Below, piece by piece: positions 1,676 through 60,945 of a stretch of DNA of 64,000 bases. A program made the position numbers and the translations under genes. The first letter of the stretch is position 1. Each line of letters opens with the position of its first letter. The stretch is from Rebecca billardiae RCC1528 (Eukaryota; Protista; Haptophyta), in the NCBI GenBank assembly GCA_965240325.2, contig OZ251239.1, forward strand, positions 372,001 through 436,000, given 5' to 3'. The notes under the pieces are model-generated. The model was not told the origin of the DNA and did no database searches. It saw nothing but the letters and a program-made list of their open reading frames with translations.

Positions 1676-2247
1676 GAGTGTATAGTCATACTATGCATAA
1701 GCAGGCAGCCTTAGGCTCACTCCCGCGCAGTGAGTGCCCGACTCTGAATGAAGTCTGAGTCTATCTACAGGTCCGGTAGGCGCCAAGGCGGTACTACGGA
1801 GTACGCCTCACCGATTCCCGCCCGTGACTCTAATCATCATTGAATGATTGATTGATCTGCATGATATCAGTCGGCAGTGACTGTATGTACTGTAATCTCG
1901 CCTGCCTGAGCTGTGTGCGACGTCTCGATTCTTCTTAGTAGTTTGTCTTGCAGCTTGATGAGCGATCAGCGAACCGCATTGCCCGCAGACACGACGACGA
2001 GATTCTGATAATTACGAAATCGAATGAACTCATTAATATTAGACTCATAGGCTATACTATTATAGCCACTATAGGGCTCTCACTCACACTGCACTGACTC
2101 AGCACTGCTAAGGCTCACTCCTGACTCTTGCGGACTCTTGGAGTTGGTCTTGGACCGCGGTCCGTGCCACGCATGCCCGTCACTATTCGTCAGGCCGTCA
2201 GCGCGGGCTTCGTCGGACAGTTAGCCCGGTACGTACTGAGATGACTA

Positions 2248-3758
<1,511 letters not shown>

Positions 3759-3793
3759 TGAAGCCTGTATCGGACGACAATTTATTAGTTAGA

Positions 3794-3907
3794 CTCTCTC
3801 TCTCTCTCTCTCTCTCTCACTCACTCACTCTCTCTCTCTCTCTCTGAGTAAAGACTCTCTCTCTCTCTCTCACTCTCTCAGACTCTCTCTCTCTCTCGAC
3901 TCTCTCG

Positions 3908-3949
<42 letters not shown>

Positions 3950-4110
3950 CTCTCTCTCTCTCTGGCTCTCTCTCTCATTCTCAGTCCGTAGCTATAACTA
4001 GCCCTAGGGCGGGGGGCCCTAGGCCGCGCGCTCAACTAACGAGATGATACGGCTTATATATATACTATCTATATATATAGATAGATAGATAGCTATATAT
4101 ATATATATAT
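3794..4110. repeat. (CT)n, (TA)n and (GATA)n simple repeats
   Basis: Directly visible. Confidence 0.9.
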
Positions 4111-17420: not shown

Positions 17421-20420
17421 CGCGCCGGCCTGCACCCGGTGCGGCCTGTGCAGTTCGAGCTGCGTTGGAGGACGCTGGATGCCACGCGGATGCAAAAAAG
17501 CGGTAATCAGGTGGTAGATAGTCAAAAGCTCTTATGGGATTTCTTTCTATGGAGGGCCCTCATCTATATTCTGTGTCCTACTCACGAAACTTTTACCGAG
17601 TTTTTTACGCCTGCTCGTCCAGTTTGACTGGGCAGACGCGAATCTCCTGTCGGTTCACGAATCTCACAAAGGAGGAAGCGGACGGACCAGTCCTGCAGCT
17701 GTTCAAGCTTCCAGCCAATGATAGATGTGTTCCAGGCAGTACTGTACAAGTTGAAAGTTGATCTGACGCCGCCGCCGCCGCCGCCCGATAACCCGATTCC
17801 CATCATCAACGGCCCGCCCCATCAGCCATGGCGGCCGTCGTCCCCTTAGCGCGAAAAGCAACAGGGTAGGCCAGTCACCCGCGGAATGCCCGCGATGCTC
17901 GCATTCGGGAGTTCAATCATACATCGGTAGTTCAGCACAGCAACTCGGCGCAGTGGCGCGTGGCGACGGCTACCATCTCCCTGCACGTCCGGATTTCCGC
18001 CGCGGAGCGCTGCGCGCCCCAGGGTCGCGCATGGACGCACGCCTGCATATTCGTCAAGTTTGTCATCTGGCCGCGATGAGAGCCTCGATGGAGGCCGTTT
18101 TGAACGCACGTAGGCGCAGCGAGACGACGCGTGCAGGGCCGTTCGACGCTGCGGGCGCCTTGCTGATGGCGTTAGAGACTCAAGATTGAGGCCTGCTGAA
18201 GACTAAGTCCCTCGGACAGTCCGGGCGCCAGACCCGGACTGTGCAGGCGCCCGAGATATGAATCTTATCTAAGATCGACAACGCCAGCACACCAGGCGCG
18301 CAGTTCAATTCCGGTCGGTGATTCACCCGAGGAGCTACACAGCACGACGATGACGCCGATGATCCTCCGGCCGCCGAATAGTTATAATAATAGTGTCAGA
18401 CGGCCTATTGCCGGGACTTCAAGCTAGCAATCAGCTCAAGTACTACTAGCTGACGCGGTCAGTACCTGTTACGTTCAGAAGAGGCTGCGCCGGCTCACTT
18501 AATACTGCTGCTGGCTATGATGCCGACTCTTCCCGACTTCCATTGGACCAGGTCCAGGGGCACGGGGGCTCCGCACCGTTGCTGTTGGCGTTGACGTGCC
18601 GCGTCGACGGCTCCGCTCACCGTCCGCTGTCCGCAGCCGCGCGGGCCGGACGCGGCGGAGTGACGCGGACGCCCAGGCTGAGAGCCTGCGACGACTATAC
18701 CGCTATAATCCAGGAGCTAATGAGTCTCAGCACCAGCTGCCGCGGCTGTGAGCTCGTCATCAGCCAGTAGTAACTCGGCCTCACGCGGCACTGGCCCTAG
18801 CGTGGTCCGACGGACTCGGGTAAGGAGGCAGCCAGGACCGTCGCGGAGGAGCCCCCGCGAGTCAAGCACTGTCTCAAAGTTCAGTCAGTGACTGTCGTAA
18901 CAGTGACGTGGCTGACTCACCGTGACTGAGTAGTGAGTCACTACTCTCATTGGAACCGTCTGCTGACGAAATTCCTGGCTTCAGCGGTGCCACCGGGCAC
19001 GTCTTCCGCGCCGGAGTCTGCGGCTCGCGTCCGGTCCGGGTCTGACTCTGAGTCTGACGCTCACTCACTGACGGTCTGAAGCTGGCCACTGCGGGCGGTA
19101 GAATTTGATAGTATTGCGTTGGTATAATAACGCAGGCGGCTGTCTGATGGCAGCCTGCGGAGAGTCGGAGACGTGCGCAGTGTAATTAAATCGTCTTATT
19201 GCATCATCAGTGCCCGGCACTCACACTGCGCGGCTGCAGCGGCAGTGGCATCAGTCACAGTGCGGCAGGGACATTGACCGTCCGCCCGGGCGGGACAGGC
19301 CGGGACAGGTCGGCCGCCGCGGGTCCGGGAATGAGTGACTCCGGGACGGGGCCGCCGGGAGGACTACGGGACGACTCGGCAAATAAGGTGGCGGGATCGT
19401 CCGCGACTGATGACGGAGAACTTTATTATTATCATTCAGCCATATATGATTGTGATGATGCCTCCGATCTGCCCACGACTACTCCGGGTCACCCCAGGCG
19501 GCCACCGTCTCAGGCAGTCAGGCAGCGTCTACTGCATTCTACTAGTACCACGACTACCAGTAGTCGTACTGATATTGTTTAGTCATCAATATAATTGTAG
19601 TAGTTATCGTATATATATATCGTGTCGTAGTCAGACAATGCCTGCTTCGGATCAGAGTCAGCTTGACCGTCCTTGGGCTTGTCGGTCGCTAGTGAGTCAT
19701 ACGCATTACGGTTATAATATTATATTTACGCGCCGGACGGATAAGTCCGAGACCGCGCCAGGCATCTGTCTGTTACTATTATTATTTATTATAATTAGAA
19801 TGACGAACTAAGCTTAAAGCTAGTTCACGGTGACGCCCGACGCCGCGGTCAGCCGGTCATGAATCACATTATCATCATCATTTGCGCGCAGCATGATCGG
19901 CCCAACTTCGTACGTCAGTCAGTTCCGCAGCCCCGGCCCGGCGGCCCGGCCTGCGTCAGGCCCGCGGCCTGCCGTGCGGGCCGCTAACTGCGGGGCCGCC
20001 GGGCGTACCGCGGTACCGCCCGCGGGCCCCGAGTCCTGCCGCATGAGTCCGCCGGTCCGCGGTCGATGCCATGATGACCGAATCACTGCGATCGGTCGAA
20101 GCCAGTCCAACGCACGCAGGGGTCAGGCCTGCGAGATGCCCGGGACAGCCGCACTGCACCCAGGGGGCTCCGTGCCGCGAGACAGAGCCACGCCGGCACG
20201 GACGCGGGACACCAGCGGTCGCGCACAGCGCAGCATCTGTACTCCGATGTGAGTCGGAACTGAGCTGATTCAGGCCCTTCAAACGCGGATGCGGACGTCA
20301 AAGCCCCGCGGGTCCGCGCGTCGGCCCTCCAGCATCGGCCAGCCATCGGGCCGCAGCCCGGCGGCAGAACGAGTGCACGAGCGCAGCGCGTCAAGCCATC
20401 GGCCGAGCGGACAGATGCGC

Positions 20421-22223: not shown

Positions 22224-22476
22224 CGTGTTACGAAACACCGACAGCCGTCGGCACGCGGAGGCGCGCGCGCGGGAGAACCGCGACGCCCTGCCGACGCAGC
22301 TTGCCGACGTTCTGGCTGGCATGTAGATGTACGACGCAGTCTCAGCACTGATCGTGTGACCAGTGACTAACTAGATACTGTACCATCGGCGACGGCTTCA
22401 TGGGCGGTGACAGTTGGCGGGCGTCAATCTCGCCTGCCTGAGCTGTGTGCGTCTCTTATTCTTTCTAGTAAAACGC

Positions 22477-22648
22477 CGGTCTGTGGCCGAGTGGGAATAC
22501 TGGCGTGCTCTTGCGTCTGAGGTCATGGGTTCAAACCCCCAGTTTCCAGGTCTCTCTTCGGAGAGCGTGCGATGAAGGATGGCGCGGCAACCTGCCACCG
22601 TGAGCCTTACGCACGTTAAAACAAATAAACTGTAGTAGCAGTAGTAGA
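22477..22648 (+). mobile_element. tRNA-derived SINE-like element
   Basis: Pol III A box TGGCCGAGTGG (22484) and B box GGTTCAAACCC (22528) at tRNA spacing, but no acceptor stem. Tail GCACGTTAAAACA..TAAACTGTAGT is shared with 44722-44748. Confidence 0.55.
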
Positions 22649-37541: not shown

Positions 37542-37623
37542 TACTGTACCCCCACATGCATGATCGTGTGCGATACCAACGGCTTTGGTTGGCCGTGTAC
37601 GACGACGGTTTTGGACCCCGGCG

Positions 37624-43476: not shown

Positions 43477-44140
43477 TACTCAAAATTAAGTCGTCATCAA
43501 TAAATAGTTTAAAAGATCGGATCGGCCCGCGGCGCCAATTATTTTAATGATGACTGCGCCGAATAGCTAGCTACTGATGAGTTACCGACTCGGATGATGT
43601 CGATCTCAAACGACGACCGATCATCCATGCACCAGCTGCTGACCAAGTACGGGGGACGGCCTTGCCGCGACTGGCACCCGAACTAATCAACATGCTTACC
43701 CGCCTTTGCATTAGTAGTGGTACCCTGAATGCGGCTTCCTGGCCGGGGCCTGACGCCGTCGACGACGACAACCGAACATCCACCATGGCGACCAACATAT
43801 CAACGTGCTCACACCACTGCCACTGCTGCAAGCTTCGACCAGTACTGTACCACCGTAACCACGACAGACGAATCAGGAGAGCTGCGCCTGCTCGCTCGTG
43901 CCTGTGTCTTTAAATCATAGACGATTTTTTAAATAGTCAGTAGTAGTCGAGTGACGAGTCCGAAACAAGCAGGCGGTAATCAGCAATGGGACAGGGGGAC
44001 TCGGCGGCCGAGTCGGCTGTGGGCGTGAGTGGCACGGCCGGTGGACATGTTCGTGGACAGCACGTGTCAGAAGTGTATCCGCCGTAGCTTTGTCGGAACC
44101 GTGCGTCTGCGTGCGTCGACCGCTGGTGCAGCCGCGTGGA

Positions 44141-46205: not shown

Positions 46206-46376
46206 GAGCGCGCGTCGTCGAGATCGAGCCGACGTCCGCCTGCCGCACGATCGGAGCTTGCCTTGCTTGCTCAGGCGGGCCAACGATCGACAGTCTTTGC
46301 GCCATCCCGGACCGCAGACTACGGCAGGCCGGACATTCGCGCAAAAAAAGGAAAAAGCAAAAATGAAAAAACAAAC

Positions 46377-48028: not shown

Positions 48029-51000
48029 AATAACCGTAAAGAAGATATGGTCCGCGGCCGTCCGGCCGTGCTGCGCAAACGATGTCCTCGCCAGCACTCA
48101 GCAGCGCTCCCTCTGTCCATCCAGCGCCGTGACCATCCCGCAAGGTTCCGCCTCACCTTCTAGACGACGATCTCTGGTTCCAGCATAGGAGATAGTCGAG
48201 GTCGGAGGTGTGGCCCATGCGAGTGACGGAGTGACCAGCCCGCAGCCGGCGAGTCCTCGCCTGCGGTGTGGCGCCACCTGTGCAGCACGACTTGGTTCCG
48301 GCATAGCTTCCCCCTGGCTGTGCTCGTGCTGGCTAACCTCGGACTGACGCGCATCAATGGGCTGTGACGTCTGACACGATCCGCGGTAAACTACAGGAAT
48401 CTTACGAACGCGCCCTGGTGCCGGCCAGGCGCCGCAGACGCAGTGCGAGCGAGCCAACCGCGCCGTGACGCCGGCGCCGTGCACTGGCCGGTTGGCCCAC
48501 AAGTGGCCATACGGCGAGACGTCACCAGACACCTGTCGCACGAGTCGCACGTGAATTAACGTGGTGCGCTCCCTCCGCCTCCCTGCCGATTCAGACTTGA
48601 TGCCCGCCGCCACACCTGACACACACCAGCTCACTACCCCAAGGCCCAGATGTGAGAGGTAAAATGGAGTCTGGGCTGCCGGCCGGAGCCCATCAAGCAG
48701 ACACGCCTGCGGCTGCTGCAGCCGCAACGTGCTGGCGATGAGACAGGGGACCAAGACCACCCCGTCCGCACCAAGCCATCCGCGATTGTGGTCATCCAGC
48801 CGCCCGAGGAGCGAGCCTCGCTCACCTGGCAGCACATGCCGCACAACAGTGGCGCAGCTGCCAAGGGCAAGGCAAAGCGGAAGGACGCAATCGTGCGGCC
48901 AGCGTCGCAGCGGGCATCCATCCAACCCACACGGGAGGCCCGCAGCCGCCTAGCAGCCCAGCCCAGCCCGTCACGGAGAGTCACAGCACTGGCTCTCGTG
49001 CAGCATCCGCACCCTGCGAGCACGGAGAGTTCAGGACGCAACGCAGGGCGGCGCGCGCGCGGCAGACGAGCCGGGCCGTCACCGCCCGCCTCCACAAGCC
49101 GCCCCCGCGCGCGCGGCGCGCACCATCCGCCCCAGTGGTAGCGCGCAGCGGCGCGCGCCGCGACCCTGGTCGAACCGGGACGCACTGCTCACGCCGTGGC
49201 GCGGCGCGACGGGCGCGGCGCGGCGAGGTCGCATGTGCTTCCCCCGGGGGCCTGAGCGTACTGGCTGAGGCCCCCACGCGCGGCGGACTCCGCGCGCGCC
49301 CCGCCTGATGTGCGCGCGGCGCGCGGCCACAGCGCGCGGCGGGCTTCCATGGGCCGGTGCCGGTCCGTATTCGGTCTCGTCAGCACCGTGCTCGGTCTCG
49401 TCAAGCGTTACTGTACGGCCCCCAGGCGGCCCCCTTTAGCGCGGTCCTCGACAGCGAGGCCAACCATCGACGCTTGGAAGCCTACGGCCGCGCCAAACGA
49501 CGGCGCCGAGCGGGCGCGCGCGCGCGGCACGAGAGGTAGACTCCCGTAGCGTGCCTCCACACCCCGCCCGCGCCAGCGCACCCGCTCCCGGCTCTCTTTC
49601 CGCTCCGCGGCGGCGCGCGGCACCCGAGCCGCACTGAACGCGTGCACGGCGCACGCCGTGGCGCGGCGCGACGGGCGCGGCGCGGCGCGCTCGGAGTGAA
49701 ATCGCCCGGGGCTCCGAGCGTACGGGCCGACGCGCCCGCGCGCGGCGCGCTCCGCCCGCGCCCCGCCAAATGCGCGTGTTATCACGAGGCGCGGGTCGCC
49801 ACCCTTACGCGCGGCGGCGCGGCCGTCGCGAGGGGTCCCCGCACTTGGCGGCGACGAGAAGCGTCCGGACTCTCCTTGATGTTGCACAAAGCCGCGGGGG
49901 CGGCACGGTTAAATCCGGGCGTGCCCCCCCCGCGGAATAACCGTAAAGAAGATATGGTCCGCGGCCGTCCGGCCGTGCTGCGCAAACGATGTCCTCGCCA
50001 GCACTCAGCAGCGCTCCCTCTGTCCATCCAGCGCCGTGACCATCCCGCAAGGTTCCGCCTCACCTTCTAGACGACGATCTCTGGTTCCAGCATAGGAGAT
50101 AGTCGAGGTCGGAGGTGTGGCCCATGCGAGTGACGGAGTGACCAGCCCGCAGCCGGCGAGTCCTCGCCTGCGGTGTGGCGCCACCTGTGCAGCACGACTT
50201 GGTTCCGGCATAGCTTCCCCCTGGCTGTGCTCGTGCTGGCTAACCTCGGACTGACGCGCATCAATGGGCTGTGACGTCTGACACGATCCGCGGTAAACTA
50301 CAGGAATCTTACGAACGCGCCCTGGTGCCGGCCAGGCGCCGCAGACGCAGTGCGAGCGAGCCAACCGCGCCGTGCACTGGCCGGTTGGCCCACAAGTGGC
50401 CATACGGCGAGACGTCACCAGGCACCTGTCGCACGAGTCGCACGTGAATTAACGTGGTGCGCTCCCTCCGCCTCCCTGCCGATTCAAGCTTGATGCCCGG
50501 CGTCACACCTGACACCAGCTCACTGCCCCAAGGCCCAGATGTGAGAGGTTAAATGGAGTCTGGGCTGCCGGCCGGAGCCCATCAAGCAGACACGCCTGCG
50601 GCTGCTGCAGCCGCAACGTGCTGGCGATGAGACAGGGGACCAAGACCACCCCGTCCGCACCAAGCCATCCGCGATTGTGGTCATCCAGCCGCCCGAGGAG
50701 CGAGCCTCGCTCACCTGGCAGCACATGCCGCACAACGGTGGCGCAGCTGCCAAGGGCAAGGCAAAGCGGAAGGACGCAATCGTGCGGCCAGCGTCGCAGC
50801 GGGCATCCATCCAACCCACACGGGAGGCCCGCAGCCGCCTAGCAGCCCAGCCCAGCCCGTCACGGAGAGTCACAGCACTGGCTCTCGTGCAGCACCCGCA
50901 CCCTGCGAGCACGGAGAGTTCAGGACGCAACGCAGGGCGGCGCGCGCGCGGCAGACGAGCCGGGCCGTCACCGCCCGCCTCCACAAGCCGCCCCCGCGCG

Positions 51001-51827
51001 CGCGGCGCGCACCATCCGCCCCAGTGGTAGCGCGCAGCGGCGCGCGCCGCGACCCTGGTCGAACCGGGACGCACTGCTCACGCCGTGGCGCGGCGCGACG
51101 GGCGCGGCGCGGCGAGGTCGCATGTGCTTCCCCCGGGGGCCTGAGCGTACTGGCTGAGGCCCCCACGCGCGGCGGACTCCGCGCGCGCCCCGCCTGATGT
51201 GCGCGCGGCGCGCGGCCACAGCGCGCGGCGGGCTTCCATGGGCCGGTGCCGGTGCGTATTCGGCTCGTCAGCACCGTGCTCGGTCTCGTCAGGCGTTACG
51301 GCCCCCAGGCGGCCCCCTTTAGCGCGGTCCTCGACAGCGAGGCCAACCATCGACGCTTGGAAGCCTACGGCCGCGCCAAGCGACGGCGCCGAGCGGGCGC
51401 GCGCGCGCGGCACGAGAGGTAGACTCCCGTAGCGTGCCTCCACACCCCGCCCGCGCCAGCGCACCCGCTCCCGGCTCTCTTTCCGCTCCGCGGCGGCGCG
51501 CGGCACCCGAGCCGCACTGAACGCGTGCACGGCGCACGCCGTGGCGCGGCGCGACGGGCGCGGCGCGGCGCGCTCGGAGTGGACTCCCCCGGGGCTCCGA
51601 GCGTACAGGCCGACGCGCCCGCGCGCGGCGCGCTCCGCCCGCGCCCCGCCAAATGCGCGTGTTATCACGAGGCGCGGGTCGCCACCCTTACGCGCGGCGG
51701 CGCGGCCGTCGCGAGGGGTCCCCGCACTTGGCGGCGACGAGAAGCGTCCGGACTCTCCTTGATGTTGCACAAAGCCGCGGGGGCGGCACGGTTAAATGAC
51801 TTAAATCCGGGCGTGCTCCCCCCGCGG
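48029..51827. repeat. Head-to-tail duplication of a ~1.9 kb unit (48029-49935; 49936-51827)
   Basis: Both copies start AATAACCGTAAAGAAGATATGG and end TTAAATCCGGGCGTG..CCCCCCGCGG; highly similar, with small indels. Confidence 0.97.
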
Positions 51828-53299
51828 AAAAAGAAATGTTCCGCGCTGTCCAACGGCAAAGCGCGGCGGATGGCGGCTTCGCCGCCGCATGGGCGCGCGA
51901 GTCGCCATTGCCCGCAGAAAACGTGCGTCAGAGGCAAGGAAGCGGGCAGATGGCGCGTCGCACGCGTCGTGGAAGTCGGTCGCGACGCTCGCCAGCCTCA
52001 GCGCGCGCGGCGAAGCCACGTCCATGGGCGCCCAGCGTGCAGGCGGCACGGCCACGCCGCTCGCCCGCGGCGACCGGCCTCGCACGCGTTCTTGCGGCGC
52101 GAAAGAGCATCCCAGCTGCGGTCATTTGCCTTGTGCGTCGGGAGACGTGTGCCAGCTAGCCAATGCGCACGCGCCGCGAGCTGCACGGTGTGCGCACACG
52201 TCGCCCGCCGCGCGGCCGGGCGTGCGCCGAAAGCGGCACAGCGAGAGAGGGCCCCGATCCGAGTGCAGGTCTCGCCAGGGCCCTCCACAAGTCCAAGGAT
52301 CCTGGGTCTTGGGTCCTTCGCGTTTGTCCAGCTGGCGCAACGCTCCGGGCCGAGCTGCTCATCTCTCGGCCGCCCCTGCTTGCCTGCGCATCGCCATCAG
52401 CAAAGCCCGAGGCTCATCTCCTCTGCGTTCTTAAACCCGCCATCCGCCCCTGCAGCCTCCGTTGTGGTTGACGGCCTTGTCGTCAGGCCTGTGAGTGCTG
52501 CGCTTGCCTGAGCCAGGGACCTTGCTGCCACGCTGGCGCAGTCTGCGCGCAGCTTTGGCACCGTCGGCTCAGTCGCTCTTCCCGTTCAGCCAGGGACAAA
52601 TCCCCACCATGCGCAAGTATATATATGTGGGGTTATTGGTACAATAACTGATTGTCTAAGAGGACGACAAGAACGCCGGGCGCCAGCGCCGCTCATCAGC
52701 CACATCGCCCTGTAACAGACCATCGCCTCAAAGGGCTGCTCCCGGACAAACAGTCTGTCCGGGTTTTTCTGCCGCCCAGGAGATCGGTTTCCGGCGCCGG
52801 CCTCTGCCGCCTGCTTCGCCAGGCGCGGCGTGTGAGGTGGCTCCAGCCAAGCTCGTCCTGCGTCGCCGCCGGCGGCGGCTCGCACGCGGGTGGCGCGTCG
52901 CGTGCACCGACCAACATCTTTCGGCGATCTCGTCGACGGCGAGCGGCATGCCCACCGCATCTGCTGCCGCTCGCCAAGGCATGAGGACGCATAAATTCCA
53001 CTGAGTAGGAACACACGCAGCCGCCTCAGCATCGACATGCCAGGCGGCGTGCCCACCTTCGGCCAGCAGTTGGCGTCGGCGTTCACGAGGACGGCTAGAC
53101 ATATATATATATATATACATCACCATTTCTGCATCCATCATGGTGTGTATAGCTATCATCGGCATTTGCTGCATGCTCACATATGTGCTGCAATACCTGC
53201 CCTCGCATGCACATCAGCACGCAGACTGTGGGTGATGTTCGTCCATACTGTACTCAATGACGTCGCGCGTTGCTTTGAAGCTATGCACGGGAGTGACAC

Positions 53300-60262: not shown

Positions 60263-60945
60263 GCACCAGCGAGACGGGCGCACTGCTGGGTGCCGCCGAC
60301 TGCTGGCGGCCTCGCCGCGCGCGAGCGAGCCCCCTTACGGCCTGGCTGGCCTGCCTGCGTGCGCCGGGAGCAGACGCGCCGAGCCGCCGAAATTCTTTTT
60401 CCCCTGGCTGCGGCTGCGCGGTCGGTGTCAAAAATGCAAAATGCCGCCTCCGGCCCTCCGCCGATTATTTCGAGTTAATTGGATTTTCTGCCGCGTCGAT
60501 CTCGCCTCCATCTCCAGCCCCTGCTTCAACCTGCGTATGTACTGTATTGGGTATTCATTAGGGCCCGTCATATGCCTTATCATAGGCCCAGAGCTGGCGC
60601 ATAGCCGATGAACAGCCACGCGTCAGCAGCGAATAGAAGCTCTGACCGCGGCTGGGTACGTATACCTATCCCGCCTGTCCCGTTACCGGGACCTGCGCCA
60701 GGTGCCCGAGCGAGGCGACGGGCCAATGCCTCCAGACGGGCACCTCTCCGGCGCTCACATTAAGAACGGATCGCTCGCTGGTGTTTCGTCCGAGCGAACG
60801 GTGAATCAGCCAATCCTGGAGAGGCGCGCGCTGGCGAGGCCCCCCCGCTCGGAACAGCTCAGCGCCCGCACTGCTGCCCCTCCTCGCGCTCGCGACAAGA
60901 GCCCACAGCCCGCGGCCCGCACCGCCGCCGCAAACGTCCAGCGCC

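Follow-up and report, generated by a model that had tools for sequence, protein, structure and literature searches.

We analysed a 64,000-nucleotide stretch of the genome of the haptophyte Rebecca billardiae RCC1528 (hereafter the window; C22:372001-436000 of a 72-Mb, 41-contig genome with ~69% G+C), which carries GC-rich open reading frames (ORFs), long microsatellites and two head-to-tail copies of a ~1.9-kb element, W1 (48029-49935) and W2 (49936-51827), both on the forward strand. We consider it probable (about 0.72), from sequence comparison, that these copies are a pair of retroposons, that a TACTG insertion in W1 is the scar left by an excised Tc1/mariner-type transposon, and that the other two larger inserts distinguishing the copies are unrelated short duplications. 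The original prediction had interpreted all three inserts as transposon footprints.

W1, which begins with AATAACCGTAAAG and ends in a 3' stem-loop (...CCCCGCGG), and W2 were 99.1% identical at aligned columns of a pairwise alignment, with ~17-20 substitutions and 5 indels, and every indel originally described between the two near-duplicate copies was present in this alignment. The polarity of the indels was determined from an alignment of 24 family copies (W1, W2 and 22 others; other copies and loci carry L numbers). At position 49409, W2, L004-L007 and L009a read GCGT-TA-CGG and older copies read GCGT-TACCCGCATCGG, and W1 alone reads GCGT-TACTGTA-CGG. By this comparison, the TACTGTA of W1 (49409-49415) is a derived 5-bp private insertion (TACTG, 49409-49413) at a pre-existing TA, and we propose it as a Tc1/mariner-type excision footprint. 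No template for TACTG was found in the neighbouring W1 sequence, and the added bases (CTG+TA) correspond to the terminal 3 nt of resident TA-flanked elements, which start with CAG and end with CTG, plus a second TA.

The same type of change was found independently at other positions. Relative to its nearest relative, L024, the copy L026 shows TA replaced by TA-CTG-TA at a second position and by TA-TAG-TA at a third, and L023 carries a change from TA to TA-TGG-TA. A fifth event came from the inspection of 40 random TACWGTA sites, one of which (L082) is a change from TA to TACTGTA within a copy of a short repeat, module A (see below), with respect to the module consensus. Insertions of the form TA+3 nt+TA make up four of the eight private 5-bp insertions in the 1.9-kb family, where chance would give ~3e-4 per insertion (P ~8e-13). 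Footprints had been proposed to be a major indel process. They are real and countable, but footprint-type events represent ~4 of ~70 private insertions (~6%) in ~63 kb of aligned copies and are therefore a measurable share rather than a major source of indels, so this part of the claim was overstated.

Genome-wide counts (one strand, two words per pattern) gave 5341 occurrences of TACWGTA. The other TA-flanked words were found 1380 (TACWCTA), 1292 (TAGWGTA) and 1141 (TAGWCTA) times, and the AT-flanked words 3594 (ATCWGAT), 2995 (ATGWCAT), 3018 (ATCWCAT) and 2983 (ATGWGAT) times. TA-flanked words are thus ~0.4 times as frequent as AT-flanked words, and the CWG core alone contributes a factor of 1.2, from which a two-way expectation based on these matched word counts is ~1523; the observed number is therefore a 3.5-fold excess, or ~3,800 sites, and the enrichment that had been put forward as a check was found. 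Some sites are iterated as TACWGTACWGTA, and three of the first 100 were pairs at a spacing of 5, one of them in the mixed form TACTGTACAGTA. Repeated visits to the two TAs of a scar predict this mixed form, which slippage cannot make. Two other ideas were considered and rejected. Ends of module A (TA+CTGTAATC...) accounted for none of the 40 random sites, all of which had unique flanks save one duplicated pair, and at most ~250 of the 709 module copies could contribute to the excess. An asymmetric motif, TACTGTAC, was suggested by seven of the nine sites in the window, but reached only 40% genome-wide.

Candidate donors were sought by scanning the sequence retrieved for the analysed loci for TA-flanked inverted repeats starting with CWG, and the elements with CAG...CTG termini whose search had been recommended proved to be present as several families. 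A 601-bp element in the flank of L005 has the ends TA|CAGGTGGATACGGG and imperfect inverted repeats of ~28 nt, also found in L106. This family has 144 TA-flanked ends genome-wide (all 144 carry TA because the search pattern included it), nearly all properly paired, corresponding to ~72 copies whose commonest length is 598 bp. A 648-bp TA-flanked miniature inverted-repeat transposable element (MITE) next to L006 has the ends CAGGC[A/C]ATCGCGGG and inverted repeats of ~24 nt. A 2.46-kb TA-flanked element with the ends CAGTTTAC... was identified at L042:132-2645 (G000:C8:3346481-3348994) and also at L043 (C9). In L042, module A forms its 48-nt terminal inverted repeats; the ends bear one or two tandem inverted module A copies, with a further head-to-head module beyond the right end, and the 2.4-kb interior contained no recognisable protein.

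Two short repeats are far more numerous. Module A is ~50-55 nt long, and its 30-nt core has 709 genomic matches. Hundreds of copies have the same boundaries on either side, and a clean filled and empty pair with TA duplication was identified (L041 compared with L040 and L035). Module B (~43 nt, starting TA|CAGTTTACTATG...) has 359 genomic matches, more than 100 of them identical over 35 nt, and its similarity ends abruptly after 43-57 nt. It was found at G000:C1:158397, 389950 and 419479 and at C3:3080583 (L102-L105); in L103-L105 it is directed towards an ATG-initiated ORF that follows at a distance of 100-270 nt. Module B is frequently located immediately before genes, and it may be a mobile promoter-proximal element. 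The more than 100 identical 35-nt module B ends and the uniform length of the 598-bp MITE suggest recent activity.

The window contains nine TACWGTA sites, every one of those originally listed and no further ones, which ranks this class first among 420 composition-matched reverse-complement 7-mer classes (mean 1.76). Compared with the genome average of 4.7 per 64 kb, the window is only slightly enriched (Poisson P=0.05). All nine had been placed outside coding sequences. An indirect check by base composition agrees for eight of them, with a local GC of 0.48-0.65 against ~0.75-0.82 in the long GC-rich ORFs, and does not for 49409, which lies within W1 at a GC of 0.76. The sites had also been listed together as footprints, and for at least one of them this is too simple. 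At 1888-1945 (forward strand), a target TA duplication adjoins the CTGTA... end of a resident module A (CTGTAATCTCGCC...), and at 22376-22472 (forward strand) TACTGTA stands exactly at a homology breakpoint, next to a truncated piece (22383-22472) of one end of the 2.46-kb element with module A termini. The remaining sites stay candidate footprints: TACAGTA at 1520-1526 and TACTGTA at 17740-17746, both in unique lower-GC DNA, and TACTGTA at 37542-37548, 43843-43849, 53246-53252 and 60540-60546.

The CAGGTGGATACGGG family includes a 3974-bp member, L106. It carries an uninterrupted ORF of 554 aa and, after it, a low-complexity ORF of 492 aa. Taken alone, the 554-aa ORF had no match in Pfam, NCBIfam, a PDB sequence search or a word-based protein search. 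An exhaustive HMMER search retrieved 161 homologues, and six of 29 aligned homologues matched Pfam DDE_1. The homologue alignment contains the nearly invariant residues D241, D364 and D410 in DET, DGHxSRF and LQxLDQ contexts, and all ESM Atlas neighbours were DDE_1 + HTH_Tnp_Tc5 proteins. The AlphaFold2 model (mean pLDDT, the predicted local distance difference test score, 75) had as best Foldseek matches in the PDB Mos1 (E 7e-5, probability 1.00), the SETMAR transposase domain and Sleeping Beauty 5CR4 (probability 0.95). On the basis of homologues and predicted fold, L106 is a pogo-like element of the Tc1/mariner superfamily with CAG...CTG termini, and we suggest that L106 and the 598-bp MITE form a candidate active pogo-like system. 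The DDE_3 profile (PF13358) identified one other uninterrupted ORF, of 460 aa (L001:1390-2772, reverse strand, G000:C31), with HTH_32 and DDE_3 domains (IS630/Tc1-like) and a 27-nt AT-rich palindrome just downstream. This ORF was rejected as a donor, having no TA-flanked inverted repeats and a host-like GC context, and is possibly a domesticated transposase. The Mariner profile (PF01359) gave no match, but its control was equally silent, so this result is uninformative.

Sleeping Beauty excision leaves TACAGTA or TACTGTA, and the ends of this element are of the same CAG...CTG kind (PMC6943129). W1 would have acquired TACTG at a TA after W1 and W2 diverged. The visitor would have been a cut-and-paste transposon of the Tc1/mariner superfamily that targets TA and has CAG...CTG termini. 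Its insertion duplicates TA; excision by a 3-nt staggered cut would produce CWG overhangs, and their end-joining TA-CWG-TA, a course of events already established for Sleeping Beauty (PMC6943129). The same process would have given rise to the roughly 3,800 excess TACWGTA sites in non-coding DNA. Reading the difference between TA and TACTGTA as a Tc1/mariner footprint, as originally proposed, is supported by a private and derived insertion at TA and by its independent recurrence, together with the genome-wide excess, the resident elements with CAG and CTG ends and a transposase fold, all of them observed; taken together, they suggest that excision footprints litter the non-coding DNA. That each scar goes back to excision, and not to some other insertion process specific for TA, is our inference, as is the choice of the element family responsible.

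Several points weigh against this interpretation. The scars are read as fossils from the sequence of one assembly. Modules A and B, which are the most frequent CAG-ended units (709 and 359 matches), appear to be one-ended, and a length of 43-55 nt is odd for a substrate of a Tc1/mariner transposase. Fillers such as TAG and TGG require donors with other termini and thus several donor families. TACTGTA is followed by C in 40% of sites, a mild asymmetry that iterated footprints explain only partly, and part of the k-mer excess in short intergenic spacers could stem from a palindromic cis-regulatory motif. The full-length template-modelling scores of the 554-aa protein against Mos1 are low (0.2-0.3), rising to ~0.5 for catalytic-domain entries. 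The protein alone falls below the Pfam thresholds, so its membership of the superfamily rests on its homologues and its fold.

The competing explanation that survives best, although we consider it unlikely, is that the scars are abortive, ultra-short insertions, in which only the terminal CTG of an element ending in ...AAACTG was integrated with TA duplication, the 43-55-nt modules being longer versions of the same event. Modules A and B both end in ...GTAAACTG|TA, with the other end variable or abrupt, the similarity among module B copies ceases after ~43-57 nt, and the series AAACTG-TCG-TAACTG-TACTG in L057, together with flanks rich in GACTG and TACTG, resembles a length series. However, each of the five direct events consists of exactly 3 nt and a TA, never of 4-8 nt of ...AACTG; two of them carry TAG or TGG rather than CTG. 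Furthermore, the constant boundaries of module A at both of its ends, with a clean TA duplication, and the presence of two-ended TA-flanked elements and of a transposase with a Tc1/mariner fold do not fit a series of truncated insertions.

It is somewhat less probable still that a functional palindromic motif in short intergenic spacers (for instance a signal for a transcription factor or for RNA processing) underlies the k-mer excess and that the TACTG of W1 arose by chance end-joining or slippage. TACWGTA is an odd palindrome, as is often the case for the sites of dimeric factors, and TACTGTA-C is mildly favoured (40%). The sites are grouped in AT-richer intergenic DNA near gene ends: of 99 spacings between successive sites, 19 do not exceed 200 bp (1.7 expected), and one divergent spacer holds three sites within 45 bp. 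Such a motif would nevertheless leave unexplained the repeated de novo change from TA to TA+3 nt+TA in non-coding repeats, the overlapping pairs phased at 5 nt and a TACTG with no template in the neighbouring sequence.

We give slightly less credence to the possibility that one generic process of duplication with filler, such as polymerase-theta or template-switch repair or reverse-transcriptase errors, produced all three large indels, although it suits two of them. The 14-bp insertion private to W1 (48460-48473) comprises the 8-bp repeat GCGCCGTG and the filler ACGCCG and is absent from the 23 other aligned copies. The 9-bp insertion private to W2 (TTAAATGAC, 51792-51800; TTAAAT plus GAC) is absent from every other copy. 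It falls within the loop part of the 3' stem-loop; the stem is unaffected and the fold still stable (z = -3.3). In both inserts, the repeat and the first filler bases are found again at another place in the same copy, a hint of template switching: the first 10 nt of the 14-bp insert recur at 48124 in W1, and the 9-bp insert has a counterpart at 50547 in W2, the matches recovered by the template search being just 9-10 nt long. Short duplications with or without filler are common among the private insertions of the family, with repeats of 3-8 bp and no mode at 8; examples are CCGT/CCGT, GCACTGG/GCACTGG and GCGGCAG/GCGGCAG (without filler) and ATCAAGC-GG-ATCAAGC, TCCGCC-GG-TCCGCC and ACCTA-GTG-ACCTA (with filler). 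Every copy would, moreover, have gone through reverse transcription (see below). The 14-bp (8+6) and 9-bp (6+3) inserts fit short duplications with filler, made by another repair or slippage-type process. The fixed TA repeat with a 3-nt filler is not predicted by such a process, and neither are the repeated use of CTG and the genome-wide excess of TACWGTA.

The 14-bp insert had been read as a hAT-like footprint and TTAAAT-gac-TTAAAT as a further excision footprint, and neither reading was supported, nothing in the sequence linking these inserts with hAT. The target duplication of hAT elements is 8 bp long, and in their footprints the two 8-bp copies are retained, the 0-3 bases between them being changed or palindromic. 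The W1 insert resembles hAT (Ac/Ds-type) footprints in its 8-bp direct repeat, as GCGCCGTG occurs twice at 48460-48481 and the duplication is retained. It differs from them in its filler, which has 6 nt and forms no palindrome of the flanks, and the repeats of related events in the family range over 3-8 bp without a peak at 8. The 9-bp insert belongs to the general class of duplication with filler. Lastly, assembly or polishing artefacts are a highly improbable cause of the indels: mis-polishing is possible in a tandem pair of a multi-copy repeat, but it has no direct support, the insertions are specific and multi-base rather than homopolymer errors, the same class is found at many loci, and artefacts cannot account for 5341 genomic sites.

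The term "duplicate copies" applied to W1 and W2 requires qualification, as the copies are real but are members of a dispersed transposable-element family rather than merely a local duplication. A genome search with W1 gave 74 matches, including at least 25 full-length copies on many contigs, with 82-97% identity and common sharp ends. The copies start with (A)ATAACCGTAAAG and end in a GC-rich 3' stem-loop (...CCCCGCGG) followed by AAAAA or AATAA; in W1, this terminal stem-loop lies at 49892-49935 (forward strand; -35.7 kcal/mol, z = -3.3), and its equivalent in W2 at 51775-51827. Other matches are shorter, spanning positions 65-1907, 532-1843 and 602-1907 of the W1 query. The unit has no terminal repeats, its 3' tail is A-rich and so are its insertion sites: L004, L006 and L020 interrupt sequences known uninterrupted elsewhere, the insertion lying directly 5' of AAAA or AATAA with 0-1 extra A. 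Target duplications of 5, 7 and 13 bp follow the AATAA tail in L005, L015 and L024, and most copies have none. No match to Rfam (gathering thresholds), including the hammerhead ribozyme, was found in the 1.9-kb unit, ARAGORN identified no tRNA in it, and neither its ORFs nor the neighbouring ORFs matched Pfam; the unit has no coding capacity. A second family, of 1.6 kb, has only the 3' half in common with the 1.9-kb family (77-78% identity), is internally 96-99% homogeneous and retains a stem whose upper part is different (L029, z = -4.2). From these sequence features, we read the 1.9-kb unit as a non-autonomous retroposon that may have spread by target-primed reverse transcription.

Head-to-tail dimers of the 1.9-kb family occur at four loci. 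The members of the dimer on C1 are 93.8% alike, and each is nearer to copies elsewhere (97.7% and 96.5%), suggesting that a younger copy inserted at the A-rich tail of an older one; a dimer would arise in this way whenever a new copy landed in such a tail. W1 and W2 are instead mutual nearest relatives within the family, and for this pair a local duplication and two quick insertions are both possible. Their two remaining indels are of other types. The single T at 49375 is present in W1 and most copies, and its absence from W2 is a private deletion. The ACAC difference (48619-48622) is a polymorphism common to a subfamily: the exact W1 state is found in L008, L011, L013, L015, L017 and L020, with L014 and L016 one base off, and the W2 state is common to L004-L007. 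Six W1/W2 differences are grouped in alignment columns 500-750 (window 48594-48661), where the W1 states match another subfamily (L008, L011 and L013), which points to gene conversion over a short tract or to a source RNA that was recombinant. Since ACAC belongs to this cluster of W1 states common to one subfamily, it is an inherited or converted difference that did not arise in place.

Several further features of the families and of the window were observed. Each copy has an internal 133-nt direct repeat of ~80% identity, its parts lying ~460 bp apart (49182-49314 and 49644-49776 in W1; 51071 and 51527 in W2). The L021 copy has a private 24-bp AT-rich insertion (ACTAATTCTATGATTTAAAGACAC, columns 2344-2367) in an otherwise 70%-GC element, and L024 has at column 2151 a private 170-bp insertion, probably a MITE of another superfamily, which is bounded by inverted ends of 13 nt (CCACCCGTCCCAG) and lacks a TA duplication. 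Among the private 2-bp insertions of both retroposon families, 13 of 21 are CG and none is GC (P ~8e-8 against base composition). They were seen in L007, L008, L009-L011, L018, L021, L026, L029, L035 and L041, and most precede a G, as in GAGT-CG-GACC; this bias could be a signature of repair or reverse transcription or a systematic assembly error. Adjoining the truncated element end mentioned above, a tRNA-like stretch (22475-22545; GGCCGAGTGG ... GGTTCAAACCCC) gave no ARAGORN call, and the sole call in the window is an intron-containing tRNA-Asp (46237-46329, reverse strand). Finally, a ~1.5-kb (TATC)n microsatellite with short (CATC)n/(TGTC)n runs, followed by (CT)n, occupies 2241-3760 and 3800-3975, and this is the 32%-GC, strongly skewed block of the composition profile.

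Excision footprints are usually met in laboratory assays or at single loci. In this GC-rich alga, they appear across the genome as a countable signal, a k-mer excess of 3.5-fold, accompanied by donors and a candidate uninterrupted transposase gene. It would therefore be of interest to use them for estimating historical rates of excision versus insertion, and the candidate active pogo-like system and its MITE could serve as genetic tools for this algal group. Indel-spectrum and motif analyses call for caution, since a top-ranked "motif" may be a repair scar, and the re-labelling of a supposed duplicate as a retroposon pair changes the dating of the W1/W2 differences. A more far-reaching possibility, which we regard as doubtful, is that cut-and-paste traffic has been heavy enough for the scars to outnumber the resident elements, that ~3,800 TA-CWG-TA fossils, some of them 5-nt-phased, reflect excision repair as a generator of intergenic sequence, and that the traffic passes mainly via 43-55-nt "solo-end" modules. 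If this were true, these modules (more than 1,000 copies, many identical and often upstream of genes) would rank as the smallest known units that a transposase of the Tc1/mariner type can move.

In comparison with known systems, the 1.9-kb family resembles the stringent-type non-LTR (long terminal repeat) retroposons, the partners in SINE/LINE (short and long interspersed nuclear element) pairs, in being non-coding, in its 3' stem-loop adjoining a short A-rich tail, in its A-rich sites, in the existence of related subfamilies with only the 3' half in common, and possibly in its variable or absent target duplications and 5'-truncated copies. It is long for a SINE, and no polymerase-III head was identified. 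Head-to-tail dimers are better known from Penelope-like elements, with which the 1.9-kb family shares their recurrence, unlike stringent-type retroposons. The proposed donor system likewise agrees with the pogo/Tigger/Fot1-type (DDE_1) branch in its TA duplication, inverted repeats of ~25-28 nt and D..D..D columns, and in combining one long element (3974 bp, with an uninterrupted ORF) with ~72 short 598-bp deletion derivatives; it differs in a protein that alone remains below the Pfam thresholds and in the second, 492-aa low-complexity ORF. The outcome is identical to that of Sleeping Beauty/Tc1 excision, a duplicated TA around the terminal 3 nt (CAG or CTG), here seen as a derived 5-bp insertion at TA, with both central bases occurring and CAG...CTG donors with TA duplications. 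In contrast to that system, the algal scars are deduced from fossils, TAG and TGG fillers also occur, and the candidate transposase is a divergent DDE_1 (pogo/Tc5-like) protein and not a member of the Tc1/Sleeping Beauty clade. New details added here to a known mechanism are the donor family and the extent of the fossil record.

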